Of a DNA stretch of 64,000 bases, positions 1,246 to 61,644 are shown in pieces. The notes under the pieces are model-generated. The model was not told where the DNA came from, did no database searches, and saw only the letters and a program-made list of their open reading frames with translations. Origin of the DNA: Leucoraja ocellata (lineage: Eukaryota); assembly GCA_036785375.1 (NCBI GenBank), contig JAWMAR010001270.1:186001-250000 (forward strand), given 5' to 3'. The first letter of the stretch is position 1, and each line of letters starts with the position of its first letter. A program made the position numbers and the translations under genes.

Positions 1246-1300
1246 ATGTCGGTGAAAGTTAGAGTTTGGTCCATGGCTCTTCTGGTCATACTAACGCAGG
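1246..1300 (+). CDS. Gene 1 leader (signal peptide) exon MSVKVRVWSMALLVILTQ
   Basis: 55 bp ending CAGG|GTATAG (phase 1). Gene 4 has a homologous exon of the same length (MSFGASVRYMTLLATVWH|GTACGT). Confidence 0.75.
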
Positions 1301-4300
1301 GTATAGTTAAAATGTGTGCCATTTCTGGTCTAAGTATCATTTTACGAAATTCGGACCTGGTTTCGAGCTATTAGGTTCATCTATTAGGCCCTCGTGGGTT
1401 TATTGTTGTTTCGTGCTTTTCGACAGTTGGTTCCTGTTTTCTCTGTCCAGTGTTTACAACTGTTTCAATTGTTCTTGCTTTTTTCCCGACAGCTACCGAA
1501 GTCTATCCGACCAGAGTGTCCCAATTCCCTGTCAACTTGGACCTTGGCGGCGGTGAACACGCTATCATGTATTGCAAATTTCCAATATTGAAAGGCAATA
1601 TTGGCGTTAATTGGTGGAGGGACGGCATGAAGACATTCCTTGAACCGGACAGTAGAAAACAATTTATCATAGATTCTGGAAGCGGAACATTTACTCTCCG
1701 ACATGTGCGTGTAGCCGACTCCGGCCTGTATTACTGTCAAGTAAAGTTCCAGCAGCAGGTTATCGGAAATGGAAGTGGCAGCCGAATCACCGTATTTGGT
1801 GAGTGTGTGTGTTAGGGAAATAAGCAATTTTCAGTTCTATGTCATTTGTAAAGTCTAGTCGCGAGGATAATATGAAAAATCGCCTGTTGATAAATATCCA
1901 GTAATAACAATTTTAAATTACAGGGACCAGTAATTCAAAATAAAACAAAGCACAATGGACATAACCAGCACGTCGAGTAGCACTTGTGGGACGCGTGGGT
2001 ATTGAGGGTTATTCTGTTCATTGTACGATACTTTGCGAGACTCCTTTTCATTGCCGCTATGAATGGGCGCAGCCCATTCATTTAGCGGTCCCGAATTTTA
2101 AGCCAATCTCCCAGATGGATTTATCGCTAAGAACGGGTAAATGTTGAGATGGAAGGAATTCATTCTGAGGTGTGGTTAGAAATGTTTTGCAATGAGATAT
2201 TTAAATAATATTCCTGTTAGTTTGAGTGGCTGGAGTGTGATGTCCAGTTTTCTCATCACTAAGAAAAGAGAGTAGGAGCAATTTTAATACGTCGATGGTA
2301 GAGTCTGTCATGCCTCTATTCTACATCGACAGCTTTAGAACCTCATAGTGCTGCTGCAACCCAAGGACCTTGGTCTTCCAACACGTGGGACTCATCGCTG
2401 CTGATTCCAAGCTGACTTCAATGAAATCTTTTTTCTTTTTTTTTGAAATCGCTTGATACTATTTTTGTCAGGCATAACCTCAGTCTATTCAACCAATTTG
2501 GCACCGTACGGGGGGAAAAAGAAGTAAACAACATCTCAAATTAAATTATTTAAAGTCCGGGAATAAACAGTAACATTTATTTCATCATTAAAGATTATCC
2601 TGATTAAGTGAATTAAGTCAAGCTTTCTAAAGATCTGTAATAAACGGACAAAGCAACCCAACAATCAACTCCCCGTCCAGTTAGACACCGGCTGCAGCTC
2701 GTACGGAAGGAGTTCGCGTTAATAAATGCCAAATATAGGGCTTTTTACGTGCAGACCTAAATGAGTAGAATCTGCACAGCGAGAAACAGAGCTTGTTCTT
2801 TTCCCTCGTTTGGCTTCTGCAAGCTATCATCATTAACGCCGATCTAACGTTGTCGATTCACTGTCGCCAAGTTGGCACAACAGATGGAACTGATTTGTAT
2901 AGAGACACAAAATGCCGGAGTAACTCAGCGGGGCAGGCAGCATCTCTGGGTAGAAGGAATGAGTGACGTTTGGGGTCGATACCCTTCTTCAAACCTCGAT
3001 CAGAAACGTCACCCGTTCGTTCTCCGAAGAGATGTTGTTGTTCGGTTTAAACCAGCTTCTGTAGTTCTTTCCTACATACTGACATAGAATAAGTGCGCTC
3101 GTAGATTGCTTGTAATATATACCACGGTGTTTCAATAAAAGCATTCAATGCGCGAGAAAGGTAGGTGTTCCAGCACTTGGTTCACATGCAGGTAAATGTT
3201 TGTGATCGGCATTTCAAACCCATATCTGGTTCTGGTTCTGGTTGATTACTGCGCAAACACCTCATGTGGTTATATCGTGCAGGTCGGAGTGAGTAGAGTA
3301 GAGTGTAGTGATTAGTTGTTGAAGTGGGTGTTTTTGACCAGGGTGAGGAGATTTAATCCATATACTACTTAAAGTGCTAACGGGATTCATCATTAATCTT
3401 CATGTATAACCGCTTTCTGTCACCACACTATACAAATCTGTTATATTTCGATTATGATGGCTCCATTTCTTTTGCAACATATGAATGATCCGAACATGGC
3501 CACTTTTAAATAATCACGGCAGGCTTCTGGCAAAAACGTTCGCGCGATACCGGGGAACGTCCATTCAGAACAGAGTTTATTTTGGAACTCCTTAAATTCT
3601 GTTGGCACTCCTTAAATTCACCCTCTTTGTATCTTGGCGGAGTTCGTCCGTGTGTCCGCTAGGAAAGGGAGTATAAATGAACGACAAACTGGGAAGTTTA
3701 AATATTAAATAATTTGGTATTGACAAATACGACTCGGTGGCGAGATAAAATGTAAATATTTACAATGAAATGGAAAGCGAACACCCGATATTTTGTTTTC
3801 TTTGCTTAAGATCCCCCAACTCCCTTGACAATTGTTCCTGCTGAAGGACTTGGCTCTCCACGGAAACTTGTGTGCAAAACTGGCGCCTTTTATCCGGAGA
3901 AATTAGAAATAATCTGGCTAAGAAATAACGAGGAAATTCGCACTGGAATCGAAGCTGTGAAAAAACCGAGCGAAGAAGGATTGTTTGTGGCTACTAGTTC
4001 TTTGGAAATAACGCAGCCTGGGGAGGGCAAAGATATTTACACCTGTCTGGTATCACATGTCTCCCTGAAGATGGCGGCCAGTTTCAGTTATACCCTGGGC
4101 CAAGGTAAGACTGGAGCCAATTACACATGATATTGGGGCGGTAGATCAAATTCGATCAGATTAATAACTGGACAGCTTTCCGTACAAGGGTAAGGGTAAA
4201 TGTGGCTCGCATTTATTCGCATGAAAGCAACACTTGTATGCTGTTTAAAATGAATTGTATTTCATCAGTTCTTGTAAGGAAATCCGTGTGAGATGAATTG

Positions 4301-6947
4301 ACAAACTGAATTGATATAATGATTGTAATGATCAAAAACGTCCTGGAATATGCATATATCTACTGTCTGGTGAAATATATGAAGATAAAGCCTAAATTCC
4401 GTTTAACGTCAGTAAGCAGCTCTCCACACATGGGCACAATACAACGGCAATTGCTTGTCCTGTGGATTCCATTACTAACTTCCATCTGGTGCCTCGTGGT
4501 ATACCTTCCAAACTTTCCGATGTGGGTATTAAAATGCACCTACGAAATGATTTACTTTGTTGACTGCCGTTTGTATATTTGTTCTGAAATGTATAAATTC
4601 TTTACAGTTTCTAAAATGTATGCTACTCGACCGGGAATTGATCGCAAACAGATTGTCGTATATGCAGTAGGTGGATCAGTAATTTTAATTCTGATTATAA
4701 TCGTGATAGGACTCACCTTAAAGATATGGCACGGTAAGAATCTTGATAATAATCATACAATAATAATTTCTATGGTTAAAACGAGAATGGATATGTCAAT
4801 AGTGTTTGCTCACAGAGGAGAACCGGGGTACTGATTGTGGATGATCAGCCATGATCACATTGAATGGCGGTGCTGGCTCGAAGGGCCGAATGGCCTACTC
4901 CTGCGCCTATTGTCTATTTTCTATTGTCAGTCAAACACTGAATCTGAATAGAAAATTATTTCATCTGCCTCACACCACCCTGGCATCACATATAACCCTT
5001 AAAGGTTCCTTCCAGTTTCAACTATTTGGTCAAACAAGGAAATGCAGGAAGCATTTTAAACGGGTCCTACGTCAGATTAGAAATACAGCTGCGTAGTTGT
5101 TCAAACACGAGAGATAGAAGTGTGAATTGTATTATTTGTGATGAAAGACCAACGTGCAAGCAGCTCAAAAACTAATACGTCATTCAATGCATCCCGACTG
5201 AGATGAATTAACAACCTGAATTTATGTGCGGCTTATTTCATGGTAAACAATCGTGAGTATATAGGACTGCGCGGCCAGATTCGGCTCAATATCCATCTAC
5301 AAATTTGTAGACGACACCACGGTTGTGAGCATGATCGCAGACAGTGGCATGTGCGTGTGTCCCTAGTTCTCGAATTCACTCTTAACCCCCTCTTTTACAT
5401 TACCCATTGCTAAAATACGTCCTTACATCTTCACGGTATCTGCACGCATGTCCTATTATGTGGATCGATGACAAATTATACTGTTTAATGGCTCTGCGTT
5501 TTTTTTAAACTGATGTCTATTGCCTAGTGTAACAATATGAAAAAAATAAATCTCTTCTTAACCTTAATCAATTATCCCCTACAGAAAGAGCTACTTTGTA
5601 AAGTGACGCGTTTGCTTGATAATTAAAACATTAACCCATAATTGTTGCAATATGTATTTCCTACAATATTTTTTGGTGGGTTGGAACGTTACTTTTCAAT
5701 GCTCTGCCGTATTAGCTTCTACTCCCTGTATAATTAATATGTCTTACGGTTTCTTATTTTTCAGCTAATCCAGAAAGTACCTATAAAATACTGATTCTCA
5801 CATGTGCAGTGGGCGGTTTGGTAATTTTACTTTCGATTATAATTTTGATCAGATTAGCATGGACGGCACAACATGGTAAGAACCTTGGATTGTTCAGTTA
5901 TTTCAATTGTATTTCTAGAAAAGAGAAAATATGCGTTTTTATTCGGAATTAAACAGAACGTCCATAGTATTTATCTATTTTACAGTTGGCTATACCAATG
6001 TAAACTGCGCCTTAAAATGCAATGATTTCACCTTTCCATTCGAAGTATTCACTCCTCCCCTGAACCAATGCATTTTGAACACCTGTGTTTATTCACCGAA
6101 ATGTATCCCTCGTGAAAAACCGATAGGAAACTGAGTGTCCGAGAGCAAAGTAACCAATTTCAATCTGTCCAAAAGGCCATGCCGGCTAACTGCAACAACC
6201 TGTGATCCGACTGACACGTGAAAGTTTATCACTAAATTCAGAATGGGAATTTACACCATGGCCTTGACAGATGAAACTGGTTGCCAGCGATCAAACAAAA
6301 ATACATCAAAACGGCTCTGTGCAATATTAGTACTTCACATGGATAGTATCCTATGTGTTTAAGAATTTAACGAATCTCTTAATCTGGCCTTCAATGTCGC
6401 CTGTTTGACGTTTGTTCCTTCTCCTTATGACCCCGTGGATTTATTCCGGGTGTTCCTGATTTCTAGCACATCTCAAAGATGTGTGGAATGGCGGGTTAAT
6501 TATCCCCTGTAATATGCTCATCTGGTAGAGGACTGCTAAAGTTTGGGGGCGCAGGGGAGGTTAATGACAATATGAAGATAATAAAGTAGAATTTGGGTTA
6601 ATGGGAGTTTGACGGTCGGCGCAGACTTGGATCCGCGTAACTACGACATAGTTGTGTGGACCAAGATCGGCTCATGTGAAAATCGAGAAAAATATTGATA
6701 TAAAATCCATATAACCTTTCTGCAAACTAAAATGTATAATTGTTGAGTACCTTAGAATGTTATTGGAAATAAAAACGATTGTTTTCCCGAGTCAATGAAC
6801 GATGGACTAACGGCCGATATGGAATTACTTCCACAGACTAAAGGAGGGGGAGCCAACAAGCTGTTCCGCATCTTCCCAACTAATAACACATCAACAATTA
6901 AGCAAAACGGCAAACACGCAAAGGTTTCAAAGAAAGCGAGAAGTTGA
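1246..6947 (+). CDS. IgSF receptor gene 1 (leader-VJ-C1-TM-tail), spliced
   Basis: Exons: leader 1246-1300, V 1493-1798, C1 3811-4104, TM-a 4608-4733 and/or TM-b 5765-5875, tail-b 6837-6947. The L/V/C1/TM junctions are GT-AG phase 1 with open frames. The link between the TM exon and the tail is unresolved. Confidence 0.8.
1493..1798 (+). CDS. Gene 1 VJ-type Ig V-domain exon
   Basis: Acceptor ttttcccgacag, donor G|GTGAGT. Contains MYC, VNWW, DSGLYYC and a J-like GNGSGSRITVF. Confidence 0.92.
3811..4104 (+). CDS. Gene 1 Ig C1-set exon
   Basis: Acceptor tttgcttaag, donor G|GTAAGA. LVC..FYP..W..YTCLVSH matches the Ig/MHC C1 signature [FY]xCx[VA]xH. Confidence 0.92.
4608..4733 (+). CDS. Gene 1 transmembrane exon TM-a (acceptor shifted or lost)
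   Basis: IDRKQIVVYAVGGSVILILIIIVIGLTLKIWH followed by G|GTAAG. The AG used in gene 2 reads TG here; an in-frame tttacag acceptor lies 15 nt upstream. Confidence 0.55.
4817..4928 (+). mobile_element. CR1 3'-UTR fragment (copy at 46518-46629)
   Basis: gatcagccatgatcacattgaatggcggtgctggctcgaagggccgaatggcc matches the 3' end of the CR1 at 25750-25810. Confidence 0.8.
5265..5342 (+). mobile_element. Short RT remnant (Rex1/Babar-like)
   Basis: DCAARFGSISIYKFVDDTTVVSMI resembles the KFADDTTVVGLI motif. Confidence 0.5.
5765..5875 (+). CDS. Gene 1 transmembrane exon TM-b
   Basis: ttcttatttttcag|...G|GTAAG, 111 bp, phase 1-1. Encodes NPESTYKILILTCAVGGLVILLSIIILIRLAWTAQH. Absent from the ORF track. 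Confidence 0.8.
6837..6947 (+). CDS. Putative terminal cytoplasmic exon tail-b
   Basis: ttacttccacag|ACTAAA. Encodes TKGGGANKLFRIFPTNNTSTIKQNGKHAKVSKKARS*. Homologous to tail-c in both acceptor context and peptide. Confidence 0.5.
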   Translation, partial: TKGGGANKLFRIFPTNNTSTIKQNGKHAKVSKKARS

Positions 6948-7489
6948 GAAACAAAATACACTTCGTTTCTGTGGACTATAAGGAATTACGGGTTTGAAGT
7001 ATTGTTCCTTTGTACCTACTGCATGCAGTCAAAACAACGATGGAGGTCACAGATACAGGAGAGGATAGTGAAACGTTCGTTTTCACATTAGGCAGTATGA
7101 TAAACTGCAGAAATTGTCGCTGAATATGTCAATTTACCGAGTGTTCAATGTCGAAAGCGATAGCAGTTTAAAGCGGATAGCAAAACTAAACACCCGCGCT
7201 AGTTTATTTAGGATGCTTTCAAACAACCTTACAGATGGCGAGAGTTCACGAACATTTCGCAACTCATTTCAAACCAAATGCCAATTAATTACATTTTAAA
7301 ATGAAATAACGTTCCATTCATTAAATCACTTGCTTTTGCAAATCAAGCCATGGTTTATAGTTCATCAGCTGTTATGAAATGCGACGGCGTGGAGACAAAC
7401 TACAGAAGGAACTTTGTCGCTGAACCGACAGAAGGCACATTGGAAGTCAGAGCATTCAATACCGACGTTGGGAGGCCATGGTACAGTAG

Positions 7490-8133
7490 CATAAGAAACA
7501 CAGAAACATAGAAACATAGAAAATATGTGCAGGAGGAGGCCATTCAGCCCTTCGAGCCAGCACCGCCATTCATTGCGATCATGGCTGATCGTCCCCAATC
7601 AATAACCCGTGCCTGCCTTCTCCCCATATCCCTTGATCCCACTAGTCACTAGCCACCATCTAACTCTCTCTTAAATCCATCCAGTGATTTGGCCTCCACT
7701 GCCCTCTGTGGCAGGGAATTCCACAAATTCACAACTCTCTGAGTGAAAAAGTGTTTTCTCACCTCAGTCTTAAATGGCCTCCCCTTTAAAACTGTGCCCC
7801 CTGGTTCTGGACTCGCCCAACATTGGGAACATTTTTCCTGCATCTAGCTCGACCAGTCCTTTTATAATTTTATATGTTTCTATAATATTACTTCCTCTCA
7901 TCCTTCTAAACTCCAGTGAATACCTCTTTTCAATCTTTCCTCATATGACAATCCCACCATCCCCGGGATCAACCTCGTGAACCTACGCTGCACTGCCTCA
8001 ATCACAAGGATGTCCTTCCTCAAATTAGGAGACCAAAACTGCACACAATACTCCAGATGTGGTCTTACCAGAGCCCTATACAACTGCAGAAGAACCTCTC
8101 TACTCCTATGCTGAAATCCTCTTGTTATGAAGC
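7490..8133 (-). mobile_element. CR1 LINE 3' fragment
   Basis: [15 protein letters not shown] and FFTQRVVNLWNSLP motifs; (CATAGAAA)n tail. Copy at about 49191-49831. Confidence 0.9.
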
Positions 8134-8299
8134 TATAGCAGGGTGACTAAATCTTCCTATCGTTCTGCATTATTTTTTAATAAGCGAGGCATTTAATAAT
8201 ACCTAGGCCCTGGGTCATTCGGAGATGAACATTCTCGCCAGCTGAGCTACTGTGTGTGTATGGACCTGCATATTCATTTTAATGAGATTTATAAATAAA

Positions 8300-9479: not shown

Positions 9480-9505
9480 TAGAAGATGGATAGATGGAAA
9501 GACAG

Positions 9506-9590
9506 ACAGACGGACGGACGGACGGACGGACGGACGGACGGACGGACGGACGGACGGACGGACGGACGGACGGACGGATGGATGGATGGA
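9506..9590. repeat. (GACG)n/(GATG)n microsatellite
   Basis: Direct inspection. Confidence 0.95.
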
Positions 9591-15172: not shown

Positions 15173-15271
15173 ATGCAGATAAAAACCTAATTATCGGATG
15201 CGCAGTGGGTGTCTTGGCAGTTTTAGTTTTGGCCATTATCTTGATAAGGCTCCAATTAAAGGCACAAAATG
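15173..15271 (+). CDS. Orphan transmembrane exon TM-c (3' half of a gene-2-type gene)
   Basis: ttgatccataag|...G|GTGAG, 99 bp. Encodes ADKNLIIGCAVGVLAVLVLAIILIRLQLKAQN. Near-identical to 32754-32852. Confidence 0.75.
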
Positions 15272-16488: not shown

Positions 16489-16638
16489 ACTAAAGATGAT
16501 AGATTCTACGTTGTATCATGTCGATTTGCAGTTACTCAACTCCAATCAGCAGTAACATTTAACCAGAAAGAGGAACATGTACCTTATGCAGATGGAAATG
16601 TTTTAAAGAAGGAGCGAAGCTGGGAATCGAAGCTGTAG
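16489..16638 (+). CDS. Putative terminal cytoplasmic exon tail-c (orphan copy)
   Basis: ttactttcacag|ACTAAA. Encodes TKDDRFYVVSCRF...EEHVPYADGNVLKKERSWESKL*. Confidence 0.55.
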   Translation, partial: TKDDRFYVVSCRFAVTQLQSAVTFNQKEEHVPYADGNVLKKERSWESKL

Positions 16639-27741: not shown

Positions 27742-30700
27742 ATGTCGGTGAAAGTTAGAGTTTGGTCCATGGTTCTTCTGGTCATACTAACGCAGGGTAT
27801 AGTTAAAATGTGTGCCATTTCTGGTCTAAGTATTATTTTACGAAAATTCGGACCTGGTTTCGAGCTATTATGATGGCGGACTGCGGGGGTGATGCGCCGT
27901 TGTGTATGGCTGCTCCTCCTGCAGTCCGTCCTTTCTCCCTTTTTTATTTTTATTTTTAGTCCTGTCCGTGGGAAATTTTAATTGGAAGTCTTCTTTTATG
28001 TGGTGGGTGGGGGGGAAGGGGAAAACTGTTTTAATTCCAGTCCTACCTGGTCGGAGATGCGATTTTCTTCCGAACCGCTTCTTCGTCCTCTCTGTGCGGC
28101 CTACCATCGAGCTGGAGCAGCGCTGGAGCGACGGTTTCCTGCCGGGACTGTAGCTTCGCCGGCGGTGCAGATGCTGGGACACCAACACCGACACGGAGCG
28201 GGCGATGCCTTACCGGGTCGCCTTCGGGTAAGCTCCGGGGCACTGGGAACGCCGACTGCAACATCACTGAGCTGCGGCTGCAGAGCGTCCAGCCGCGGGC
28301 GGGCGGCACTGGATTTCAACACCGCGGGGCCTGGTGTCCGAGTTCGCCAGTGTCAGAGGTCCGGCTAGCGCGGCCTGAGAACTTTGGACATTGCAGTCTT
28401 CAGGGAGGAAGTGGCCGCTTCAGTCCAGGCCGCTGAAGAATGTTCACCCGACGCCGATGATCCAGCTTCGCGGCAGAGGGCCTGAGAACATCGAGTTGGC
28501 TGAGGAGGCCACATATAGACCCCGACCTCGGGTGGACTATGAGGGGGAGAACTGGATATGTTTAGTGCCTTCCCTCACAGTGAATTTTGCTGTGGGGGGA
28601 CGTTTCATGTTGATTTCTATAGTGTACTGTTCTGTGTCTTTTTTCTTTTTTTTTGTTTTTGTTTTTATGGATTTATTGACATTTAATCTGTTCAATTAAT
28701 TTAATCAATCTCTGTAAAGCACTTTGGTTCAAATACTGGTTTTGTTGAAAAGTGCTATATAAATAAAGATTATTATTATTAGGTTCATCTATTAGGCCCT
28801 CGTGGGTTTATTGTTGTTTCGTGCTTTTCGACAGTTGGTTCCTGTATTCTCTGTCCAGTGTTTACAACTGTTTCAATTGTTCTTGCTTGTGTCCCGACAG
28901 CTACCGAAGTCTATCCGACCCGAGTGTCCCAATTCCCTGTCAACTTGGACGTTGGCGGCGGTGAACATGCTATCATGTATTGCAAATTTCCAATATCGAA
29001 ACGCAATATTAGCGTTAATTGGTGGAGGGGCGGCATGAAGACATTCCTTGAACCGGACAATAGAAAACAATTTACCATAGATTCTGGAAGCGGAACATTT
29101 ACTCTCCAACATGTGCGTGTAGCTGACTCCGGCCTGTATTACTGTCAAGTAAAGTTCCAGCAGCAGGTTATCGGAAATGGAAGTGGCAGCCTGATCACCG
29201 TATTTGGTGAGTGTGTGTGTTAGGGAAATAAGCAAGTTTCAGTTCTATGTCATTTGTAAAGTCTAGTCGCGAGGATAATATGAAAAATCGCCTGTTGATA
29301 AATATCCAGTAATAACAATTTTAAATTACAGGGACCAGTAATTCAAAATAAAACAAAGCACAATGGACATAATCACCAGGTCGAGTAGCACTTGTGGGAC
29401 GCGTGGGTATTGATGGTTATTCTGTTCATTGTACGATACTTTGCGAGACTCCTTTTCATTGCCGTTATGAATTTGCGCAGCCCTTTCATTTAGCGGTCCT
29501 GAATTTTAAGCCAATCTCCCAGATGGATTTATCGCTAAGAACGGGTAAATGCTGATATGGAAGGAATTCATTCTGAGGTGTGGTTAGAAATGTTTTGCAA
29601 TGAGATATTGAAATAATATTCCTGTTAGTTTGAGTGGCTGGAGTGTGATGTCCAGTTTTCTCATCACTAAGAAAAGAGAGTAGGAGCAATTTTAATACGT
29701 CGATGGTAGAGTCTGTCATGCCTCTATTCTACCTCGACAGCTTTAGAACCTCATAGTGCTGCTGCAACCCAAGGACCTTGGTCTTCCAACATGTGGGACT
29801 CATCGCTGCGGATTCCAAGCTGACTTCAATGAAATCTTTTTTCTTTTTTTTGAAATCGCTTGATACTAATTTTGTCAGGCATAACCTCAGTCTATTCAAC
29901 CAATGTGGCACCGTACGGGGGGAAAAAGAAGTAAACAACATCTCAAATGAAATTATTTAAAGTCCGGGAATAAACAGTAACATTTATTTCATCATTAAAG
30001 ATTATCCTGATTAAGTGAATTAAGTCAAGCTTTCTAAAGATTTGTAATAAACGGACAAAGCAACCCAACAATCAACTCCCCGTCCAGTTAGACACCGGCT
30101 GCAGCTCGTACGGAAGGAGTTCGCGTTAATAAATGCCAAATATAGGGCCTTTTACGTGCAGACCTAAATGAGTAGAATCTGCACAGCGAGAAACAGAGCT
30201 TGTTATTTTCCATCGTTTGGCTTCTGCAAGCTATCATCATTAACGCCGATCTAACGTTGTCGATTCACTGTCGCCAAGTTGGCACAACAGATGGAACTGA
30301 TTTGTATAGAGACACAAAATGCTGGAGTAACTCAGCGGGACAGGCAGCATCTCTGGGTAGGAGAAATGAGTGACGTTTGGGGTCGATACCCTTCTTCAAA
30401 CCTCGATCAGAAACGTCACCCATTCGTTATCCGAAGAGATGTTGCTGTTCGGTTTAAACCAGCTTTTGTAGTTCTTTCCTACATACTGACATAGAATAAG
30501 TGCGCTCGTAGATTGCTTGTAATATATACCACGGTGTTTTAATAAAAGCATTCAATGCGCGAGAAAGGGAGGTGTTCCAGCACTTGGTTGACATGCAGGT
30601 AAATGGTTGTGATCGGCATTTCAAACCCATATCTGGTTCTGGTTCTGGTTGATTACTGCGCAAACACCTCATGTGGTTATCTCACTGAGTAGAGTAGAGT

Positions 30701-33700: not shown

Positions 33701-34231
33701 GCAAAAAAAATCTGATAACAATTTCCTACTGGCAGATCACTGGAAGATCGCTAACTCAACTAAACAAAACTAAAAAACAGAATAATCCATCCCAGCAGTA
33801 GCGCGCAATGCAGTTTTAGAATAAACTACTGTTTTCTCAACTCATTAGAAGCAGTTCTCCAACTTGCAGTGAAGCACTTTTAATCCCGTGCCCGTGTATC
33901 ATTAAAGATGACGGATAGCAATTCCATATTTGTTTGCACGTTGGTGCAGTCTCATGGATGAGTATGAATCCTGAAATGTATATACATTCTCTATGAGACT
34001 GGTAGTATTTTGTTTCAAAATCGTATTATTTGTGCCACCAGAGGGTAATTGACTAATGGCCGATATAAATTACTTTCACAGACTAAAGATGATAGATTCT
34101 ACGTTGTATCATGTCGATTTGCAGTTACTCAACTCCAATCAGCAGTAACATTTAACCAGAAAGAGGAACATGTACCTTATGCAGATGGGAATGTTTTAAA
34201 GAAGGAGCGAAGTTGGAAATCGAAGCTGTAG
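27742..34231 (+). CDS. IgSF receptor gene 2 (leader-VJ-C1-TM-a/TM-c-tail-c), spliced
   Basis: Leader 27742-27796, V 28901-29206, C1 31191-31484, TM-a 32005-32115, TM-c 32754-32852, tail-c 34082-34231. Frames are open and splice sites are GT-AG. Confidence 0.8.
27871..28781 (+). mobile_element. Non-autonomous retroposon (~910 bp) in gene 2 intron 1
   Basis: Absent from genes 1 and 3. GC-rich body; 3' agcacttt..aaagtgctatataaataaa followed by (TTA)n; short tatta duplication. Confidence 0.8.
28901..29206 (+). CDS. Gene 2 VJ-type V exon
   Basis: Same boundaries as gene 1. Differs from gene 1 at 9 amino acids. Confidence 0.92.
31191..31484 (+). CDS. Gene 2 C1-set exon
   Basis: FYP, W and YTCLVSH motifs present; splice sites intact. 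Confidence 0.92.
32005..32115 (+). CDS. Gene 2 TM-a exon
   Basis: ttcttaattttcag|...G|GTAAG, 111 bp. Encodes ASSGIDRKQIIVYAVGGSVLLILIIIVIRLSLKMWP. Confidence 0.75.
32754..32852 (+). CDS. Gene 2 TM-c exon
   Basis: ccataag|...G|GTGAG. Encodes ADKNLIIGCAVGVLAVLVLVIILIRLQLKAQN. Confidence 0.8.
34082..34231 (+). CDS. Gene 2 putative terminal exon tail-c
   Basis: Same as 16489-16638 except that it ends WKSKL*. Confidence 0.55.
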   Translation, partial: TKDDRFYVVSCRFAVTQLQSAVTFNQKEEHVPYADGNVLKKERSWKSKL

Positions 34232-42926: not shown

Positions 42927-45900
42927 ATGTCGGTGAAAGTTAGAGTTTGGTCCATGGCTCTTCTGGTCATACTAACGCAGGGTATAGTTAAAATGTGTGC
43001 CATTTCTGGTCTAAGTATTATTTTACGAAAATTCGGACCTGGTTTCGAGCTATTAGGTTCATCTATTAGGCCCTCGTGGGTTTATAGTTGTTTCGTGCTT
43101 TTCGACAGTTGGTTCCTGTATTCTCTGTCCAGTGTTTACAACTGTTTCAATTGTTCTTGCTTGTGTCCCGACAGCTACCGAAGTCTATCCGACCCGAGTG
43201 TCCCAATTCCCTGTCAACTTGGACGTTGGCGGCGGTGAACATGCTATCATGTATTGCAAATTTCCAATATCGAAAGGCAATATTAGCGTTAATTGGTGGA
43301 GGGGCGGCATGAAGACATTCCTTGAACCGGACAATAGAAAACAATTTACCATAGATTCTGGAAGCGGAACATTTACTCTCCAACATGTGCGTGTCGCTGA
43401 CTCCGGCCTGTATTACTGTCAAGTAAAGTTCCAGCAGCAGGTTATCGGAAATGGAAGTGGCAGCCTGATCACCGTATTTGGTGAGTGTGTGTGTTAGGGA
43501 AATAAGCAAGTTTCAGTTCTATGTCATTTGTAAAGTCTAGTCGCGAGGATAATATGAAAAATCGCCTGTTGATAAATATCCAGTAATAACAATTTTAAAT
43601 TACAGGGACCAGTAATTCAAAATAAAACAAAGCACAATGGACATAACCAGCAGGTCGAGTAGCACTTGTGGGACGCGTGGGTATTGATGGTTATTCTGTT
43701 CATTGTACGATACTTTGCGAGACTCCTTTTCATTGCCGTTATGAATTGGCGCAGCCCATTCATTTAGCGGTCCTGAATTTTAAGCCAATCTCCCAGATGG
43801 ATTTATCGCTAAGAACGGGTAAATGCTGATATGGAAGGAATTCATTCTGAGGTGTGGTTAGAAATGTTTTGCAATGAGATATTGAAATAATATTCCTGTT
43901 AGTTTGAGTGGCTGGAGTGTGATGTCCAGTTTTCTCATCACTAAGAAAAGAGAGTAGGAGCAATTTTAATACGTCGATGGTAGAGTCTGTCATGCCTCTA
44001 TTCTACCTCGACAGCTTTAGAACCTCATAGTGCTGCTGCAACCCAAGGACCTTGGTCTTTCAACATGTGGGACTCATCGCTGCGGATTCCAAGCTGACTT
44101 CAATGAAATCTTTTTTCTTTTTTTTGAAATCGCTTGATACTAATTTTGTCAGGCATAACCTCAGTCTATTCAACCAATGTGGCACCGTACGGGGGAAAAA
44201 AGAAGTAAACAACATCTCAAATGAAATTATTTAAAGTCCGGGAATAAACAGTAACATTTATTTCATCATTAAAGATTATCCTGATTAAGTGAATTAAGTC
44301 AAGCTTTCTAAAGATTTGTAATAAACGGACAAAGCAACCCAACAACCAACTCCCCGTCCAGTTAGACACCGGCTGCAGCTCGTACGGAAGGAGTTCGCGT
44401 TAATAAATGCCAAATATAGGGCCCTTTACGTGCAGACCTAAATGAGTAGAATCTGCACAGCGAGAAACAGAGCTTGTTATTTTCCATCGTTTGGCTTCTG
44501 CAAGCTATCATCATTAACGCCGATCTAACGTTGTCGATTCACTGTCGCCAAGTTGGCACAACAGATGGAACTGATTTGTATAGAGACACAAAATGCTGGA
44601 GTAACTCAGCGGGGCAGGCAGCATCTCTGGGTAGAAGGATGAGTGACGTTTGGGGTCGATACCCTTCTTCAAACCTCGATCCGAAACGTCACCCATTCCT
44701 TCTCCGAAGAGATGTTGCCTGTCCCGCTGAGTTACTCCAACATATATTCGGTTTAAACCAGTATCTGCAGTTCTTTCCTACATACTGATATTGAATAAGT
44801 GCGCTCGTAAATTACTTGTAATAGAAACCACGGTGTTTCACTATAAGCATTCAATGCGCGAGAAAGGTGTTCCAGCACTTGGTTCACATGCAGGTAAATG
44901 GTTGTGATCGGCATGTCAAACCCATATCTGGTTCTGGTTCTGGTTGATTACTGCGCAAACACGTGATAAGTGGTTATCTCCCGCATGTCCGAGTGAGTAG
45001 AGTAGAGTAGTGATTAAATGTTGAAGTGGGTCTTTTTGACCAGGGTGAGAAGATTTAATCCATATACTACTTAAAGTGCTAACGGGATTCATCATTAATC
45101 TTCATGTATAACCGCTTCCTGTCACCACACTATACGAATCTGTTATATTTCGATTATGATGGCTCCATTTCTTTTGCAACATATGAATGATCTGAACATG
45201 GCCACTTTTAAATAATCACGGCAGGCCTCTGGTAAAAACTTTCGCGCGATACCGGGGAACGTCCATTCACAACAGAGTTTATTTTGGAACTCCTTAAATT
45301 CTGTTGGAACTCCTTAAATTCATCCTCTTTGTATCTTGGCGGAGTTCGCCCGGTTGTCCGCTAGGAAAGGGAGTATAAATGAACGACAAACTGGGAAGTT
45401 TAAATATTAAATAATTTGGTCTTGACAAATACGACTCGGTGGCGAGATAAAATGTAAATATTTGCAATGAAATGGAAAGCGAACACCGATATTTTTTTTC
45501 CTTTGCTTAAGATCCCCCAACTCCCTTGACAATTGTTCCTGCTGAAGGACTTGGATCTCCACGGAAACTTGTGTGCAAAACTGACGCCTTTTATCCGGAG
45601 AAATTAGAAATAATCTGGCTAAGAAATAACGTGGAAATTCGCACTGGAATCGAAACTGTGAAAAATCAGAGCGAAGAAGGATTGTTTGTGGCTTCTAGTT
45701 TTTTGGAAATAACGCAGCCTGGGGAGGGCAAAGATATTTACACCTGTCTGGTATCACATGTCTCCCTGAAGGTGGCGGCCAGTTTCAGTTATACCCTGGG
45801 CCAAGGTAAGACTGGAGTCAGTTACACATGATATTGGGGCGGTAGATCAAATTCGATCAGATTAATAACTGGACAGCTTTCCGTACAAAGGTAAGGGTAA

Positions 45901-48648
45901 ATGTGGCTCGCATTTATTTGCATGAAAGCAACACTTGCATGCTGTTTAAAATTAATTGTACTTCATCAGTTCTTGTAAGGAAATCCGTGTGAGATGAATT
46001 GACAAACTGAATTGATATAATGATTGTAATGAGCAAAAACGTCCTGGGATATGCATATATCTACTGTCTGGTGAAATATATGAAGATAAAGCCTAAATTC
46101 CGTTTAACGTCAGTAAGCAGCTCTCCACACATGGGCACAATACAACGGCAATTGCTTGTCCTGTGGATTCCATTACTAACTTCCATCTGGTGCCTCGTGG
46201 TATACCTTCCAAACTTTCCGATGTGGGTATTAAAATGCACCTACGAAATGATTTGCCTTGTTGACTTCCGTTTGTATATTTGTTCTGAAATGTATAAATT
46301 CTTTACAGTTTCTAAAATGTATGCTACTCGACCGGGAATTGATCGCAAACAGATTGTCGTATATGCAGTAGGTGAATCAGTAATTTTAATTCTGATTATA
46401 ATCGTGATAGGACTCACCTTAAAGATATGGCACGGTAAGAATCTTGATAATAATCATACAATAATAATTTCTATGGTTAAAACGAGAATGGATATGTCAA
46501 TGGTGTTTGCTCACAGAGGAGAACCGGGGTACTGATTGTGGATGATCAGCCATGATCACATTGAATGGCGGTGCTGGCTCGAAGGGCCGAATGGCCTACT
46601 CCTGCACCTATTGTCTATTTTCTATTGTCAGTCAAACACTGAATCTGAATAGAAAATTATTTCATCTGCCTCACACCACCCTGGCATCACATATAACCCT
46701 TAAAGGTTCCTTCCAGTTTCAACTATTTGGTCAAACAAGGAAATGCAGGAAGCATTTTAAACGAGTTCTACATCAGATTAGAAATACAGCTGCGTAGTTG
46801 TTCAAACACGAGAGATAGACGTGTGAATTGTATTATTTATGATGAAAGACCAACGTGCAAGCAGCTCAAAAACTAATACGTCATTCAATGCATCCCGACT
46901 GAGATGAATTACCAACTTTAATTTATGTGCGGCTTATTTCATGGTAAACAATCGTGAGTATACAGGACTGCGCGGCCAGATTCGGCTCAATATCCATCTA
47001 CAAATTTGTAGACGACACCACGGTTGTGAGCATGATCGCAGACAGTGGCATGTGCGTGTGTCCCTAGTTCTCGAATTCACTCTTAACCCCCTCTTTTACA
47101 TTACCCATTGCTAAAATACGTCCTTACATCTTCACGGTATCTGCACGCATGTCCTATTATGTGGATCGATGACAAATTATACTGTTTAATGGCTCTGCGT
47201 TTTTTTTAAACTGATGTCTATTGCCTAGTGTAACAATATGAAAAAAATAAATCTCTTCTTAACCTTAATCAATTATCCCCTACAGAAAGAGCTACTTTGT
47301 AAAGTGACGCGTTTGCTTGATAATTAAAACATTAACCCATAATTGTTGCAATATGTATTTCCTACAATATTTTTTGGTGGGTTGGAACGTTACTTTTCAA
47401 TGCTCTGCCGTATTAGCTTCTACTCCCTGTATAATTAATATGTCTTACGGTTTCTTATTTTTCAGCTAATCCAGAAAGTACCTATAAAAGACTGATTCTC
47501 ACATGTGCAGTGGGCGGTTTGGTAATTTTACTTTCGATTATAATTTTGATCAGATTAACATGGACGGCACAACATGGTAAGAACCTTGGATTGTTCAGTT
47601 ATTTCAATTGTATTTCTAGAAAAGAGAAAATATGCGTTTTTATTCGGAATTAAACAGAACGTCCATAGTATTTATCTATTTTACAGTTGGCTATACCAAT
47701 GTAAACTGCGCCTTAAAATGCAATGATTTCACCTTTCCATTCGAAGTATTCACTCCTCCCCTGAACCAATGCATTTTGAACACCTGTGTTTATTCACCGA
47801 AATGTATCCCTCGTGAAAAACCGATAGGAAACTGAGTGTCCGAGAGCAAAGTAACCAATTTCAATCTGTCCAAAAGGCCATGCCGGCTAACTGCAACAAC
47901 CTGTGATCCGACTGACAAATGAAAGTTTATCACTAAATTCAGAATGGGAATTTACACCATGGCCTTGACAGATGAAACTGGTTGCCAGCGATCAAACAAA
48001 AATACATCAAAACGGCTCTGTGCAATATTAGTACTTCACATGGATAGTATCCTATGTGTTTAAGAATTTAACGAATCTCTTAATCTGGCCTTCAATGTCG
48101 CCTGTTTGACGTTTGTTCCTTCTCCTTATGACCCCGTGGATTTATTCCGGGTGTTCCTGTTTTCTAGCACATCTCAAAGATGTGTGGAATGGCGGGTTAA
48201 TTATCCCATGTAAAATGCTCATCTGGTAGAGGACTGCTAAAGTTTGGGGGCGCAGGGGAGGTTAATGACAATATGAAGAGAATAAAGTAGAATTTGGGTT
48301 AATGGGAGTTTGACGGTCGGCGCAGACTTGGATCCGCGTAACTACGACATAGTTCTGTGGACCAAGATCGGCTCATGTGAAAATCGAGAAAAATATTGAT
48401 ATAAAATCCATATAACCTTTCTGCAAACTAAAATGTATAATTGTTGAGTACCTTAGAATGTTATTGGAAATAAAAACGATTGTTTTCCCGAGTCAATGAA
48501 CGATGGACTAACGGCCGATATGGAATTACTTCCACAGACTAAAGGAGGGGGAGCCAACAAGCTGTTCCGCATCTTCCCAACTAATAACACATCAACAATT
48601 AAGCAAAACGGCAAACACGCAAAGGTTTCAAAGAAAGCGAGAAGTTGA
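42927..48648 (+). CDS. IgSF receptor gene 3 (leader-VJ-C1-TM-a/TM-b-tail-b), spliced
   Basis: Leader 42927-42981, V 43175-43480, C1 45512-45805, TM-a 46309-46434, TM-b 47466-47576, tail-b 48538-48648. Confidence 0.8.
43175..43480 (+). CDS. Gene 3 VJ-type V exon
   Basis: Differs from the gene 2 V domain at one amino acid; splice sites intact. Confidence 0.92.
45512..45805 (+). CDS. Gene 3 C1-set exon
   Basis: C1 motifs and splice sites intact. Confidence 0.92.
46309..46434 (+). CDS. Gene 3 TM-a exon (shifted acceptor, Gly->Glu in the TM segment)
   Basis: YAVGESVILILIIIVIGLTLK; donor G|GTAAG. Confidence 0.5.
47466..47576 (+). CDS. Gene 3 TM-b exon
   Basis: Encodes NPESTYKRLILTCAVGGLVILLSIIILIRLTWTAQH; AG and GT intact. 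Confidence 0.8.
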
Positions 48649-51173: not shown

Positions 51174-51462
51174 NNNNNNNNNNNNNNNNNNNNNNNNNNN
51201 NNNNNNNNNNNNNNNNNNNNNNNNNNNNNNNNNNNNNNNNNNNNNNNNNNNNNNNNNNNNNNNNNNNNNNNNNNNNNNNNNNNNNNNNNNNNNNNNNNNN
51301 NNNNNNNNNNNNNNNNNNNNNNNNNNNNNNNNNNNNNNNNNNNNNNNNNNNNNNNNNNNNNNNNNNNNNNNNNNNNNNNNNNNNNNNNNNNNNNNNNNNN
51401 NNNNNNNNNNNNNNNNNNNNNNNNNNNNNNNNNNNNNNNNNNNNNNNNNNNNNNNNNNNNNN
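51174..51462. other. Assembly gap (N run) at the position orthologous to the 9506-9590 microsatellite
   Basis: Ns; flanks match about 9480 and 9610. Confidence 0.97.
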
Positions 51463-58063: not shown

Positions 58064-61000
58064 ATGTCGTTTGGAGCATCAGTTCGATACATGACTCTTC
58101 TGGCTACAGTTTGGCACGGTACGTTTAGATACATGTGGGGTTTCCGAATCTCATGTCATGTTTTATAATATTCTATTTTTAAAAAAGACATGTAGTTCTG
58201 GAGTAATTCCGTGGGTCAGGCAGCATCTAAGGAGAACGTGGATAGGTGACGTTTCGGGTCGAAACTACTTCAGAATCTAAAGAAGACTCTTGGCAGCAGA
58301 GTTACTCCAACACTCGGTGTCTTTTTTTGTAAACCAGTTCCTTGTATCTCCTTAGAATATTCTATGTTGGTTACCAAGCACGAATTCAGTTACAATGCTT
58401 CTTAATTCGTTTATGTCCGATTCTAGTTTATTTTGAATTTTTCAACTCTTTGTTCATTTTGCTTGTCCGGATGGCCAACTGTTTTCAATATTCTTGTTTT
58501 ATTTCTGGCAGCCTTCGAAGTAACTTCAACTAAAGTGGGACAATTCCCTAAAGACCTGACCGTCCACAGCGGAGGCAATGCGTCCATGTTCTGCACATTC
58601 TCAATACAACAAGTTACTCCTGCTGTTTACTGGTGGAAATGGGGCGAGAAGACATTTATAGAACCAGACAGCAGAAAACAATTTTCTATCAGAAAGGGCA
58701 TTGCGGATTTCATTCTCCTGAATACGAAAATCGCGGACTCCGGAGTTTATTATTGTAAAGTGAAACAACAGCAGCAATCTATCGGAGATGGACCTGGCTC
58801 AACGCTCACCGTGTTCGGTAAGTGCCCTGTAAGGGAGACATTTTAAGCTTCCCGGGGTACAAGTAAAGCTCGCTGATATGAATAACATGACATTTTATAA
58901 CTCGGCAAAAACTCGATAAGATTTATACTATAAAAACAAACCGTTCCAAATCTGATATATTTAAATAATCCGTAAGTGGGTCAGCATCTGTGTAGAGATA
59001 AAATGTCCTTTTCCTCATTTCGTACTTCTCCAGAGATTTTCCATTGCTCTCCTGCAGATTCGCGCTGTCCACTTTGGCGTTATTGCCCACGATTCAGATT
59101 CACCCTTTACTACCCTCCATGGTGTGCTTGAATGTATTTACATCAAATGACTTAGATTAAAAGGTTGTTTAGAATTGTTTTTCATGGAAAATGTTGAAGC
59201 CACGTGGATGTTTTAATCTCAGTTGTGATAGGAATGTCCCATTTCTGCTCCCGAAGACAATGGAATAATTTTAACACCTCCATCCTGGATAGGCTCTTTA
59301 AAACAATATTCAAACGCCACCACTCTACGCCAATAGTGGTTACAATCTCATAAGAATAGTGTTTGCAGTCCATATTGATTCACACATAATTTTCGCTTTT
59401 TACGCGCCACCTTACAAATTATCTCCGAAATCTGTAATCATTTAATCACTTAAAGTCTGGAAACAAGAAAATAAATCGATCTCTCGAGATTGGGATGTTA
59501 GAATATTAATTTAGATTAGGTATCGTGGGGTATGTGACAACAGGGTTTGTGACACAGAGACCTGACGCACAAACCACCCACGATTGAATTGAACAACGGA
59601 GCGGCCTCGGCCTTAAATATTCGACTCTTATTCGTCGGCTGTAAACGAAGCTGAACCCCGGATCAAACCACCACGGTTATTATACAGATGAATCCTATAA
59701 ACCGTTGAGAGGTTTGATTTGCTCGATTCTTACTCCAGGGACAGAATATCACCGTCTCACTCCGAGGATTCTCATTAAACCCTTAACCTTTATAAAATAC
59801 GAGTAAGATTTAACGGCATTGGGGCAAACGCCTGAGCTCCCGTCCTTACAATTACATTCTTACATGACTCAACCACGTTACCCACAAGAATCAGTCTCTC
59901 CACGTTTCCCCCCAATTATTCATTCTATCTAAATAGATCTGTGTTCGTGCCACAGATTAATTTTACGTTTTAGCTGATGATGCACTCGCCGAGGCTGAGA
60001 ATAAGCATCGAGGTCTCCTCTGAGTTCAATAAAGAAACCGATCCAACAACCTGTTACTAAAGAAACGGAATGTAAAAATATTTAAAACTTATTAAACTCG
60101 TAGTCATCAACTCGTAGAGCGATTTAACAAGAGGCCTCCTACTAACTACCTACTGATTGTAGATCCGACGGAGGTAGATCAGCGTTCGCAAATACCCACT
60201 CTGTGCTGATATAAGTGAAATCTTATTCAGACCAAACGTCTTCAACAAACCGAGTACATTTGGAAAATGGCAAAATTGTAGAAGAAACGTAGTCTAATTT
60301 GGATTTCCCATTCGCGTATTGTACTTATTGAAGAAGTGTCGAATATTTGCACGGCGATACTAATTATCAATAAATAGACACAAAAAGCTGGAGTAACTTA
60401 ACGGGCAGGCAGCATCTCTGGAGAGAAGGAATGGGTGACGGTTCGGGTCGAGATCCTTCTCCAGACATCTGCATTTCCTTCTTAATAACTATTAGTATAA
60501 CTCTATCATGCTCAAATTGCTCGGTTAGCATTGTGGAGAAACGTCCCGGGCCAAAAGCTGTATCACTCGAGCCCTCCATCCCAGGTATTAAACAATTGTG
60601 TGGCCCAAGCTTTCATCAATGCAACTACGGCCTGCGTATTGATTATTGATATTGGTGACATCTGGATATATACAGCGCTACATTGGTTAGCGCTGCCCAA
60701 AATTTCAGCGACCCAAGTTCGACCCAGATCCTGCGTGCGTCCATATATAGTTCTCCCCTTCAACGCGTAGACATTCCACCGGTGCTCCGGTTTATTCCGC
60801 GTGCCACAGATATGCAGGTTGGTAGGAAAACTAGTCTCTGTAAATTGTCCCGGTTGATTGGTCGTGGTGAGGAGTGAAGAGGAAAGTTGACAGGAGATGA
60901 AAAATGAATACGTGGAGATGGAGGTTTAATTACGCAATAGGTAATCTGGGCTGCTCTGTGCTGTGCTGTGCTGTGTATCTCTGTGATATTCCACTCTACA

Positions 61001-61644
61001 CGTATCATTCTTTACACCAAAATCTCGTAAAAACAGTCATTTTTGAATGAACATAAAAAGTTGTTGCCATCGATGATACACACCCGCCACGCTACTGATT
61101 TGGCACTTTAGAACATTGGCGATTGTTCAGAAGCCCTCATATTACCTACATCCAAACCTCGGATTCCTTATGTATTGCTTGGATATATTTCACTGTCAAA
61201 TCTAAAACAATGACAAATCAGTGATTGCAAAAGCGATTGTACCGATAACCGATCTCATGGTGGGAGTGCAAGGTCGCGGTGTGACGAGGCAAACTAGAAT
61301 GTTATCGTTGAATTGGAAAGAAAATGTGCAACATATTTTTTCTTCTGTTACAGCTCCGCCAACTCCCCTGAGCATTAGCCAAGTTAATGGCAGTTCGCCG
61401 CCCAGACTTGTGTGTAAAACGGCTGCCTTTTCCCCGAAGGAAGTCAAAATATCCTGGCAAAGAAACGGTGTAACAATTTCCACCGGGGAAGAACGTGTGA
61501 ACATCAGTAGCGTGGAGGAGTTGTATGTGGCTTCCAGCTTTCTCCAAGTAACAAAGCCTACCTGGCGCGTTGATATTTACACCTGCCTAGTGTCACATGT
61601 CTCCCTTGCGGTCCCGGCCAAAGTCGACTACACCGTCAAGCCAG
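58064..61644 (+). CDS. IgSF receptor gene 4 (diverged paralogue; TM/tail not found in window)
   Basis: Leader 58064-58118, V 58512-58817 (306 bp, DSGVYYC, GDGPGSTLTVF), C1 61354-61644 (FSP, YTCLVSH). All junctions are phase 1 GT-AG. Confidence 0.85.
58512..58817 (+). CDS. Gene 4 VJ-type V exon
   Basis: ttctggcag|CC...G|GTAAGT. 53 of 101 residues identical to the gene 1 V domain by manual alignment. Confidence 0.92.
61354..61644 (+). CDS. Gene 4 C1-set exon
   Basis: ttctgttacag|CT...G|GTAAGA; C1 signature present. Confidence 0.92.

Follow-up and report, generated by a model that had tools for sequence, protein, structure and literature searches.

A tandem array of four germline-joined VJ-C1 genes in Leucoraja ocellata, probable members of a multigene family of cartilaginous fish

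We analysed a stretch of 64,000 nucleotides from Leucoraja ocellata (GenBank assembly GCA_036785375.1, contig JAWMAR010001270.1, positions 186,001 to 250,000 of the forward strand), hereafter the window, whose own coordinates are used throughout. It contains four genes on the same (+) strand, each consisting of a leader exon, one exon encoding a V domain together with a J-like strand (VJ exon), and one C1-set exon:

1246..1300, + strand: gene 1 leader exon (ATG at 1246, donor GT at 1301; 18 codons and 1 base, phase 1)
1493..1798, + strand: gene 1 VJ exon (J-like strand GSGSRITVF after a compact V, preceded by the last part of the split leader; Pfam and structure model)
3811..4104, + strand: gene 1 C1-set exon (C1-set E 1.4e-11; structure model)
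27742..27796, + strand: gene 2 leader exon (splice sites and phase)
28901..29206, + strand: gene 2 VJ exon (splice sites, Pfam)
31191..31484, + strand: gene 2 C1-set exon (splice sites, Pfam)
42927..42981, + strand: gene 3 leader exon (splice sites and phase)
43175..43480, + strand: gene 3 VJ exon (splice sites, Pfam)
45512..45805, + strand: gene 3 C1-set exon (splice sites, Pfam)
58064..58118, + strand: gene 4 leader exon (splice sites and phase)
58512..58817, + strand: gene 4 VJ exon (GPGSTLTVF; Pfam, V tree)
61354..61644, + strand: gene 4 C1-set exon (C1-set E 1.6e-13)

Exon lengths were nearly uniform across the four genes, with leaders of 55 b, VJ exons of 306 b and C1-set exons of 291-294 b. 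AG acceptors preceded all eight V and C1 exons, while all 12 leader, V and C1 exons were open, ended in phase 1 and were followed by a GT donor. Searches and structure predictions were run exon by exon, or with stored proteins of relatives. Every second exon passed the Pfam C1-set model (45-51 bits; cut-off 21). The four V exons passed both the V-set model (26.7-33.6 bits; cut-off 26) and the I-set model (24.2-34.6 bits; cut-off 23.7). A tblastn search of the window using 34 family proteins as queries returned exactly four V and four C1 matches, all on the + strand. A preliminary description of this DNA had proposed four genes with the same exon phases and a leader/VJ/C1 layout, and the AG/GT junctions, phase-1 ends and Pfam matches bear this out. 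The J-like G strands likewise read in all four genes as it had given them (GxGSxITVF or GxGSxLTVF), being GSGSRITVF in gene 1, GSGSLITVF in genes 2 and 3, and GPGSTLTVF in gene 4. Its statement that no RSS splits or flanks the V agrees with our search, in which no RSS-like site lay within 400 b of the V exon in any of the four genes. A rearranging V gene of the IgL, TCR or IgNAR type was ruled out, as V and J share a single exon with no RSS.

Exons for a membrane span (TM) and candidate last coding exons were recognised downstream of genes 1-3:

4608..4733, + strand: gene 1 TM exon a (phase 1 to 1, uncharged span)
5765..5875, + strand: gene 1 TM exon b (phase 1 to 1, paralogue of exon a and candidate alternative to it)
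6837..6947, + strand: gene 1 candidate last coding exon, tail b (phase 0, without tyrosine)
15173..15271, + strand: third TM-type exon, candidate TM c, 10 kb behind gene 1
16489..16638, + strand: tail c, a candidate last coding exon with SKL at its end and a single tyrosine (VPYADG)
31990..32115, + strand: gene 2 TM exon a (codon 2 is a stop when read from the old acceptor; open as 32005-32115 from the alternative acceptor)
32754..32852, + strand: gene 2 TM exon c (open, phase 1 to 1)
34082..34231, + strand: gene 2 candidate last exon, matched to the tail c type
46309..46434, + strand: gene 3 TM exon a (splice sites and phase)
47466..47576, + strand: gene 3 TM exon b, matched to the TM b type
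48538..48648, + strand: gene 3 candidate last exon, matched to the tail b type

The proposal that TM exons follow genes 1-3 held for genes 1 and 3, in which two uncharged TM exons would be alternatives to each other and the last exon has no tyrosine. For gene 2 it held with a qualification. There, TM exon a is about 10% diverged from its counterparts in genes 1 and 3 and meets the stop at codon 2 unless a new in-frame acceptor, ending at 32004, is used to bypass it. Gene 2 would thus combine this diverged exon with an intact TM exon c and a tail bearing one non-canonical tyrosine. The core of the membrane span was uncharged in TM exons a, b and c of the window, and no canonical ITIM or ITSM was present in the tail exons recognised within it. 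Therefore, the paired-receptor mechanism discussed below is not seen in these four genes themselves. Searches for cytoplasmic exons between the TM and last exons, using tblastn and an HMM of relatives' tails, gave no more than weak matches (E 0.18 or above), and these exons were not found. No TM-like reading frame of gene 4 was found in 61645-64000, up to the end of the window, and this gene probably carries on past that end.

The sole run of N in the window lies between the recognised exons of gene 3 and gene 4, so that none of the reading frames spans it:

51174..51462, no strand: assembly gap standing in for an intergenic microsatellite; no exon touched

To the left of the gap the sequence is collinear with unit 1 of the array as far as 9501, and to the right it picks up again at unit-1 position 9610. 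Because of this collinearity, the gap is taken to replace the (GACG)n/(GATG)n microsatellite of 9502-9609, and a gap inside a gene was ruled out.

Sequence comparison marks genes 1-3 as recent mosaic duplicates and gene 4 as an older paralogue. Across genes 1, 2 and 3, the 5' flank and leader differ by no more than 1.2%, the introns are 2-10% apart, and identity among the copies is mosaic. An insertion of 0.9 kb, a deletion of 10 kb and an inserted LINE further distinguish the copies. It is unlikely that they represent an assembly artefact or haplotype copies, as they lie in one gap-free stretch and differ by these introns, indels and the LINE insertion. Between genes 1 and 4, the V exon gave a pN of 0.31 and a pS of 0.66. 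Between the young copies, pN/pS was about 0.5 for the V exon and exceeded 1 for the C1 exon. These ratios rest on very few changes (8 non-synonymous to 1 synonymous for g1-g3), such that constraint on the young copies is unproven. The expanding tandem array that had been suggested is confirmed in the form of recent duplication and recombination, as reflected in the mosaic identity of genes 1-3. Its growth and homogenisation probably proceed by tandem duplication and gene conversion.

A repeat-rich array of this kind could also be decaying, with the four copies as unexpressed relics or pseudogenes. LINE fragments are present between the genes, the ITIM/ITSM motifs of relatives are lost from the window tails, and the window stretch was found in no indexed RNA run. 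The stop and divergence of gene 2 TM exon a point the same way, but gene 2 retains both an in-frame rescue acceptor and the intact TM exon c. Decay also accords poorly with 12 of 12 leader, V and C1 exons that are open with intact splice sites, with the near-identity of the 5' flank and leader in genes 1, 2 and 3, and with a pN below pS between genes 1 and 4. We regard this explanation as very unlikely.

Structure models refined the assignment of both domains. The V-exon model (pLDDT 93.2) contained strands A, A', B, C, D, E, F and G without a C'' strand, and its G strand was in two parts (88-92 and 96-100) on either side of the GxG motif. Its best non-redundant structural match was a skate IgNAR V domain (8ht3_A; Z 14.7, rmsd 2.1, 96 of 104 residues), statistically tied with NCAM2 Ig1 (Z 14.3). 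The original description of a V domain therefore stands by the Pfam V-set matches of all four genes, with the correction that the model is of a compact, I-set-like V lacking C''. As modelled (pLDDT 89.7), the second domain is a canonical C1-set domain. It matched MHC class II beta2 (Z 15.0), UrIg2 (14.4), B7-H6 (14.0) and SIRP-gamma d2 (13.6), scores that are tied within about 1.5. Look-alikes in the ESM Atlas were generic V-C1 clusters only.

Among the matches looked up, named relatives came only from sharks, rays and a chimaera. Looking up 30 V-domain matches, taken from the best 150 of 496 HMMER matches, gave 28 named sequences, all 28 of which were chondrichthyan. The full-length family profile, run as a word-index search with 8000 candidates scored, gave 55 matches, comprising 53 chondrichthyan sequences, 1 Logan contig and 1 weak teleost match (E 1.3e-9, following a drop from 1.7e-35). 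RefSeq models of relatives join V, C1 and TM at the sites predicted by the phase-1 junctions of the window (...TVF/APPTPL...). The window genes share the family layout, in which a compact V and a GxGxxLTV strand are encoded in one exon followed by one C1-set exon. In a V tree of 101 columns and no outgroup, genes 1-3 grouped together (100/100) within a 9-row clade (99/93). All four genes fell within a starred 16-row clade (98/95) whose named rows are all batoid, which is nested in turn in a 22-row clade (99/99) with shark genes among its members. The placement in a cartilaginous-fish family is thereby upheld.

The relatives also carry signalling features. A membrane span was present in 71 of 90 family rows, a count in which rows include isoforms and cluster co-members. 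These 71 divided into 32 with ITIM/ITSM, 14 with a charged span and no ITIM, and 25 with neither. Within each chromosome-level assembly, the family rows came from records of one single size. The white shark family member lies on a 193.5 Mb record, and the available text of PMC10751288 places the white shark MHC on chromosome 19. From this comparison, the family cluster is probably not MHC-linked.

Automatic RefSeq names for the relatives were inconsistent, including SIRP-alpha-like, B7-H6-like, Ig-lambda-like, tapasin-like and MHC class II-like. The earlier suggestion that the family may be uncharacterised was thus only partly right, as its predicted proteins are already in RefSeq under such names. 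No published description of the family was found in the literature, the coverage of which was without Kinlein 2021, Flajnik 2012, Ohta 2019, Fu 2019 and the UrIg paper of 2023. Nor did comparison of sequence, structure and domain layout show a one-to-one orthologue in a characterised family, SIRP, B7-H6, NKp30 and UrIg/UrIg2 among them.

The SIRP family shares a non-rearranging V with a J-like strand followed by C1, and its inhibitory ITIM and charged-span activating forms have counterparts among the relatives. Could the window then hold SIRP-family genes that have lost one C1 domain? The commonest RefSeq name among the relatives is 'tyrosine-protein phosphatase non-receptor type substrate 1-like', their tails carry LTYAAL-type ITIM motifs, and charged-span partners exist. 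The family profile also gave a single collinear alignment with SIRP-alpha d1-d2 (E 6.9e-31), and likewise with SIRP-gamma (E 4e-27), although the same profile scored Ig heavy and light chains and UrIg2 equally or higher. A SIRP combines a full V-set d1 with a pair of C1 domains, whereas in each gene of the window a compact V lacking C'' is joined to a single C1 exon. The identity of SIRP-gamma d2 to the C1 model is only 16%, and the many genes in several old subfamilies do not form a one-to-one match. An origin by loss of a C1 domain from SIRP is, in our view, highly improbable.

Another explanation is that these genes are cartilaginous-fish co-orthologues of B7-H6 (NCR3LG1), and hence surface ligands of NKp30-like receptors as opposed to receptors. 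The V, C1, TM layout is shared, many relatives are named 'NCR3 ligand 1-like' in RefSeq, and the window copies have no recognisable signalling motif. Work by Flajnik from 2012 is said to have found that the copy number of NKp30 is correlated with that of B7H6 in species from sharks to mammals, which would favour this explanation. The B7-H6 C domain (4zso_E) ranked fifth of 48161 chains against the C1 model (Z 14.0, rmsd 1.5 over 90 residues, 27% identity), but as part of the tie noted above with MHC II, UrIg2 and SIRP. The V domain speaks against it, being compact, I-set-like and VJ-type with a canonical GxGxxLTV J strand. No B7-H6 V was among the 50 best non-redundant structural matches of the V model, in which the sole B7-family V was that of PD-L2 (rank 40). 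Nor did B7-H6 appear among the 60 best PDB sequence matches when the C1 exon, the V exon or the family profiles served as queries. Moreover, many spanned relatives have receptor-type features, either ITIM/ITSM tails or charged spans. We consider co-orthology with B7-H6 unlikely.

The NKp30 (NCR3) receptor, of which a shark family was reportedly described by Kinlein in 2021, shares a non-rearranging VJ-type domain encoded by one exon. Human NKp30 matched the V exon in the J region (E about 2e-3), its fold matched at a TM-score of 0.78, and one V-only isoform of a relative is automatically named NCR3-like. NKp30 has no C domain and carries an Arg in its membrane span, whereas all four window genes carry a C1 exon and the spans are uncharged. 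It was absent from the 60 best matches of either V profile. A V-only profile search for short NKp30-like relatives returned six proteins, none from nurse shark.

The V domains of IgNAR and NAR-TCR share the compact fold without C''. The shark V-NAR 4hgk_C was the best single-domain PDB sequence match of both V profiles (E 1e-13 and 4.7e-11). RAG joins V, D and J segments to make a NAR V domain, in contrast to the germline-joined V exon of the window, and identity is only about 20-25%.

Two further systems were compared by description. PRARP, reportedly described by Fu et al. in 2019, is said to have a non-rearranging VJ, a membrane span and an ITIM, with C1 present in most species, and to exist as a gene pair from bony fish to birds. 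By this description its architecture and presumed logic would be alike, but the family matches listed included no close relative from bony vertebrates. The NITRs of teleosts are encoded by large families of tandem genes, whose V domains do not rearrange and carry J motifs, and they include both inhibitory and activating receptors. Known from bony fish, they pair V with an I-type domain in place of the C1 of the window genes.

UrIg and UrIg2 are likewise elasmobranch and non-rearranging, with a single-exon VJ, a split leader and C1-type domains (available text of PMC12227049). UrIg2 (9dmx) matched the C1 exon (E 2.9e-10), the family profile (E 4.9e-34) and the C1 model (Z 14.4). In the available text of PMC12227049, UrIg is secreted with three C domains, UrIg2 has nine to eleven, and neither is presented as a many-copy family. 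In contrast, the window genes have one C1 exon each, a membrane span and many paralogues.

Our preferred reading, held with moderate confidence, is that the window contains four tandem members of a cartilaginous-fish-restricted multigene family of VJ-C1 type I membrane glycoproteins that forms a paired-receptor system. Each protein would have a split leader, a germline-joined compact VJ, one C1, one membrane span and a cytoplasmic tail. The compact VJ domain would be the likely ligand-binding face and the C1-set domain a membrane-proximal stalk. Across the family, one type of ectodomain would be joined to three kinds of 3' end. Relatives with ITIM/ITSM tails would recruit SH2 phosphatases and be inhibitory, those with a short tail and an Arg or Lys in the membrane span would pair with adaptor chains and be activating, and the third kind would have plain tails. 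This would be a paired-receptor system of the SIRP, NITR or PRARP kind. The tails and charged spans of relatives, as read from their sequences, suggest an immune function for the family. Family members would also be expressed at the cell surface, bind ligands and signal. Given their uncharged TM exons and motif-poor tails, the local copies look signalling-poor, and may be decoys, ligand-like or dependent on a partner chain.

The germline-joined VJ-C1 layout was described at the outset as one proposed for antigen-receptor precursors, and this proposal is found in the available texts of PMC10751288 and PMC12227049. Non-rearranging VJ-C1 genes are regarded as rare relics of the gene split by the RAG transposon, and UrIg (2023) and UrIg2 (2025) were each reported as a notable single gene (PMC12227049; PMC10751288). 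A bolder reading, which we judge quite unlikely, is that the compact C''-less VJ is a surviving non-rearranging, membrane-bound relative of the NAR-type V of IgNAR and NAR-TCR. The family would then be a third, multi-copy class of antigen-receptor-precursor relic beside UrIg and UrIg2, providing inhibitory/activating pairs before or alongside RAG-based receptors. If so, it would have the exact one-V, one-C1, one-TM layout of a TCR chain.

The current automatic names of these proteins are shown to be unreliable. In contrast to UrIg and UrIg2, the family consists of many copies of a membrane-bound chain of one V and one C1, which are still duplicating and recombining and occur in species ranging from chimaera to rays. 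Should it be expressed on leukocytes, the family would constitute a paired innate receptor system with an antigen-receptor-like ectodomain in cartilaginous fish, and its V-NAR-like fold would bear on the unsettled origin of single-domain shark antibodies.

Gene models for the four tandem VJ-C1 genes of the window (g1 to g4, all on the + strand) were made by reading the sequence, with frames and splice sites then checked by script. Each gene has a leader exon of 55 bases (18 codons plus one base) and a V exon of 306 bases; the C1 exon measures 294 bases in g1-g3 and 291 in g4. All eight V and C1 exons have an AG acceptor, and all 12 leader, V and C1 exons end in phase 1 at a GT donor, which bears out the preliminary description's claim of identical exon phases in the four genes. 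The split leader is described as canonical for antigen-receptor genes in PMC12227049, and g1-g4 share that layout. When 34 proteins of the family to which these genes belong were compared with the window by tblastn, four V and four C1 matches were returned, all on the + strand. The leader-to-V intron spans 192-193 bases in g1 and g3, 393 in g4 and 1104 in g2, the last carrying an insertion of about 0.9 kb (27871-28776) that is not in g1 or g3.

A single exon holds both the V domain and the J-like strand in all four genes. A heptamer-spacer-nonamer scan gave no site within 400 bases of any V exon (0 of 4) and 17 weak, scattered matches over the whole window, in agreement with the earlier statement that no RSS splits or flanks the V.

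Membrane-span (TM) exons had been ascribed to genes 1-3. TM exon a, phase 1-to-1, indeed follows the C1 exon in all three, but in g2 the claim fails for the exon as read from its original acceptor: the second codon of g2 exon a (31990-32115) is a stop. A newly formed acceptor ending at 32004, 15 bases downstream and in frame, avoids this stop and gives an open exon. No TM-like frame was found 3' of the g4 C1 exon within the window. Further TM exons and candidate last exons were placed as follows.

Further membrane-span and candidate last exons
5765-5875 (g1) and 47466-47576 (g3), + strand: TM exon b, the second TM exon, a paralogue of exon a
6837-6947 (g1) and 48538-48648 (g3), + strand: candidate last exon without tyrosine
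15173-15271 (behind g1) and 32754-32852 (g2), + strand: TM exon c
16489-16638 (behind g1) and 34082-34231 (g2), + strand: candidate last exon with one tyrosine

Gene 1 is followed by a series of three TM exons (4608-4733, 5765-5875 and 15173-15271), all phase 1-to-1 and paralogous to one another. Exons b and c retain the span motif Cys-Ala-Val-Gly, common to many relatives; exon a has Tyr where b and c have the Cys.

Self-comparison of the window (42% G+C) resolved three repeat units.

Repeat matches within the window
1-9501 versus 41678-51173: 96.9%
1-1373 versus 26496-27870, and 1369-4817 versus 28777-32195
10133-15116 versus 51980-57242
15116-25852 versus 32697-41240

The only run of N (51174-51462) is flanked on its left by sequence collinear with unit 1 to position 9501, and on its right the match restarts at 9610. 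Since unit 1 has a (GACG)n/(GATG)n microsatellite at 9501-9590, the gap stands in for that microsatellite; the region has no exon, so reading-frame continuity is unaffected. Long Pro/Ser/Leu-rich open frames over CT-rich low-complexity repeats (8319-9251 and 50017-50923) end shortly before the microsatellite and the gap, respectively, and are probably not genes. The intergenic DNA contains fragments of LINE-type reverse transcriptases (22838-24984, 13944-14471, 56079-56612 and 63074-63394). The first includes an RVT_1 match at 24088-24981 (E 2e-31) and zf-RVT at 22841-24052 on the opposite strand; the unit 2 counterpart lacks this 22.5-24.9 kb piece.

Introns of g1, g2 and g3 diverge by 2.4-9.4%, and identity among the three (600-4830, 27096-32210, 42278-46531) is mosaic. 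The 5' flank, or promoter region, and leader differ by at most 1.2% in every pair. The near pair is g2 and g3 across the V exon and the first half of intron 2, g1 and g2 across the rest of intron 2 and the C1 exon, and g1 and g3 across intron 3 and TM exon a, where g2 is about 10% distant. As judged from sequence, this is the pattern that gene conversion or unequal crossing-over would be expected to leave. For the young copies pN/pS is based on few changes (g1 against g3: 0.034/0.076 for V and 0.036/0.014 for C1); g1 against g4 gave pN 0.31 and pS 0.66.

All four second exons passed Pfam C1-set and carry a Y-x-C-x-V-x-H signature, while all four first exons passed both V-set and I-set. The V exon and the C1 exon were folded separately with family alignments (pLDDT 93.2 for V, 89.7 for C1). 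In the predicted V model, strands A, A', B, C, D, E, F and G are present, C' is a one-residue trace and C'' is missing; the G strand is in two pieces (88-92 and 96-100) around the GxG motif. Foldseek placed CD79b, many shark V-NARs, TCR V-alpha and PD-1 best, with NKp30 at rank 39, all at E 1e-8 to 2e-7. Compared with 48161 non-redundant chains, the V model was closest to a skate IgNAR V (Z 14.7), with NCAM2 Ig1 (14.3) in a tie. The C1 model matched MHC class II beta2 (Z 15.0) and alpha2 (14.5), UrIg2 (14.4), B7-H6 (14.0) and SIRP-gamma d2 (13.6).

In sequence searches with the g1 V exon alone, NKp30 scored about 2e-3, and TCR alpha, the light chains and the amphioxus VJ-C2 protein came out roughly level with it. 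Profiles from V domains alone matched I-set proteins, with shark V-NAR as best single-domain chain (1e-13 and 4.7e-11); NKp30 and B7-H6 were absent from their best 60 matches. A profile of 20 full-length family members scored Ig heavy chains, UrIg2 (E 4.9e-34), SIRP-alpha (6.9e-31), light chains and SIRP-gamma comparably. Examined for the defining features of SIRP, B7-H6, NKp30, UrIg and UrIg2, g1-g4 showed the full set of none of them. The papers covered by a literature search gave no account of the family.

HMMER with the g1 V exon returned 496 proteins at E ≤ 1e-3, headed by giant multi-Ig proteins ranked by summed score; among the best 150 of these, single-stretch full-length matches were 37-58% identical. 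Thirty single-stretch matches were looked up, and all 28 that were named were chondrichthyan (Hypanus, Mobula, Narcine, Hemitrygon, Pristis, Amblyraja, Scyliorhinus, Heterodontus, Heptranchias, Chiloscyllium, Hemiscyllium, Mustelus, Carcharodon and Callorhinchus). With 8000 word-sharing candidates scored, the family profile recovered 55 proteins: 53 chondrichthyan, one Logan contig and one teleost, the last at E 1.3e-9 after a fall from 1.7e-35. Automatic names of the relatives disagree (SIRP-alpha-like, NCR3 ligand 1-like, Ig lambda-like, tapasin-related-like, MHC class II-like, TCR beta-like, PD-L1-like). In a V tree without outgroup (58 rows, 101 columns), g1-g3 and g4 fell within a starred 16-row batoid clade, nested in a 22-row clade (99/99) that also holds sharks, which makes a ray or skate the probable source. 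Other subfamilies mix sharks, batoids and Callorhinchus, and because of this span the subfamilies are probably old.

One RefSeq isoform of a relative, Mobula birostris X2 (P0021), skips the C1 exon and runs from V straight to a TM exon and ITIM tail, an NKp30-like layout made from a VJ-C1 gene.

In their recognizable exons, the window copies have neither ITIM/ITSM motifs nor a charged span. We screened 90 family rows, isoforms counted, and found a membrane span in 71. Of these 71, 32 carry ITIM/ITSM motifs (LTYAAL and TLYADV, for example), 22 have a charged residue in the span (14 of them without an ITIM), and 25 have neither. Judged from these motifs, the tails and spans of the family would mark a system of paired receptors, inhibitory and activating.
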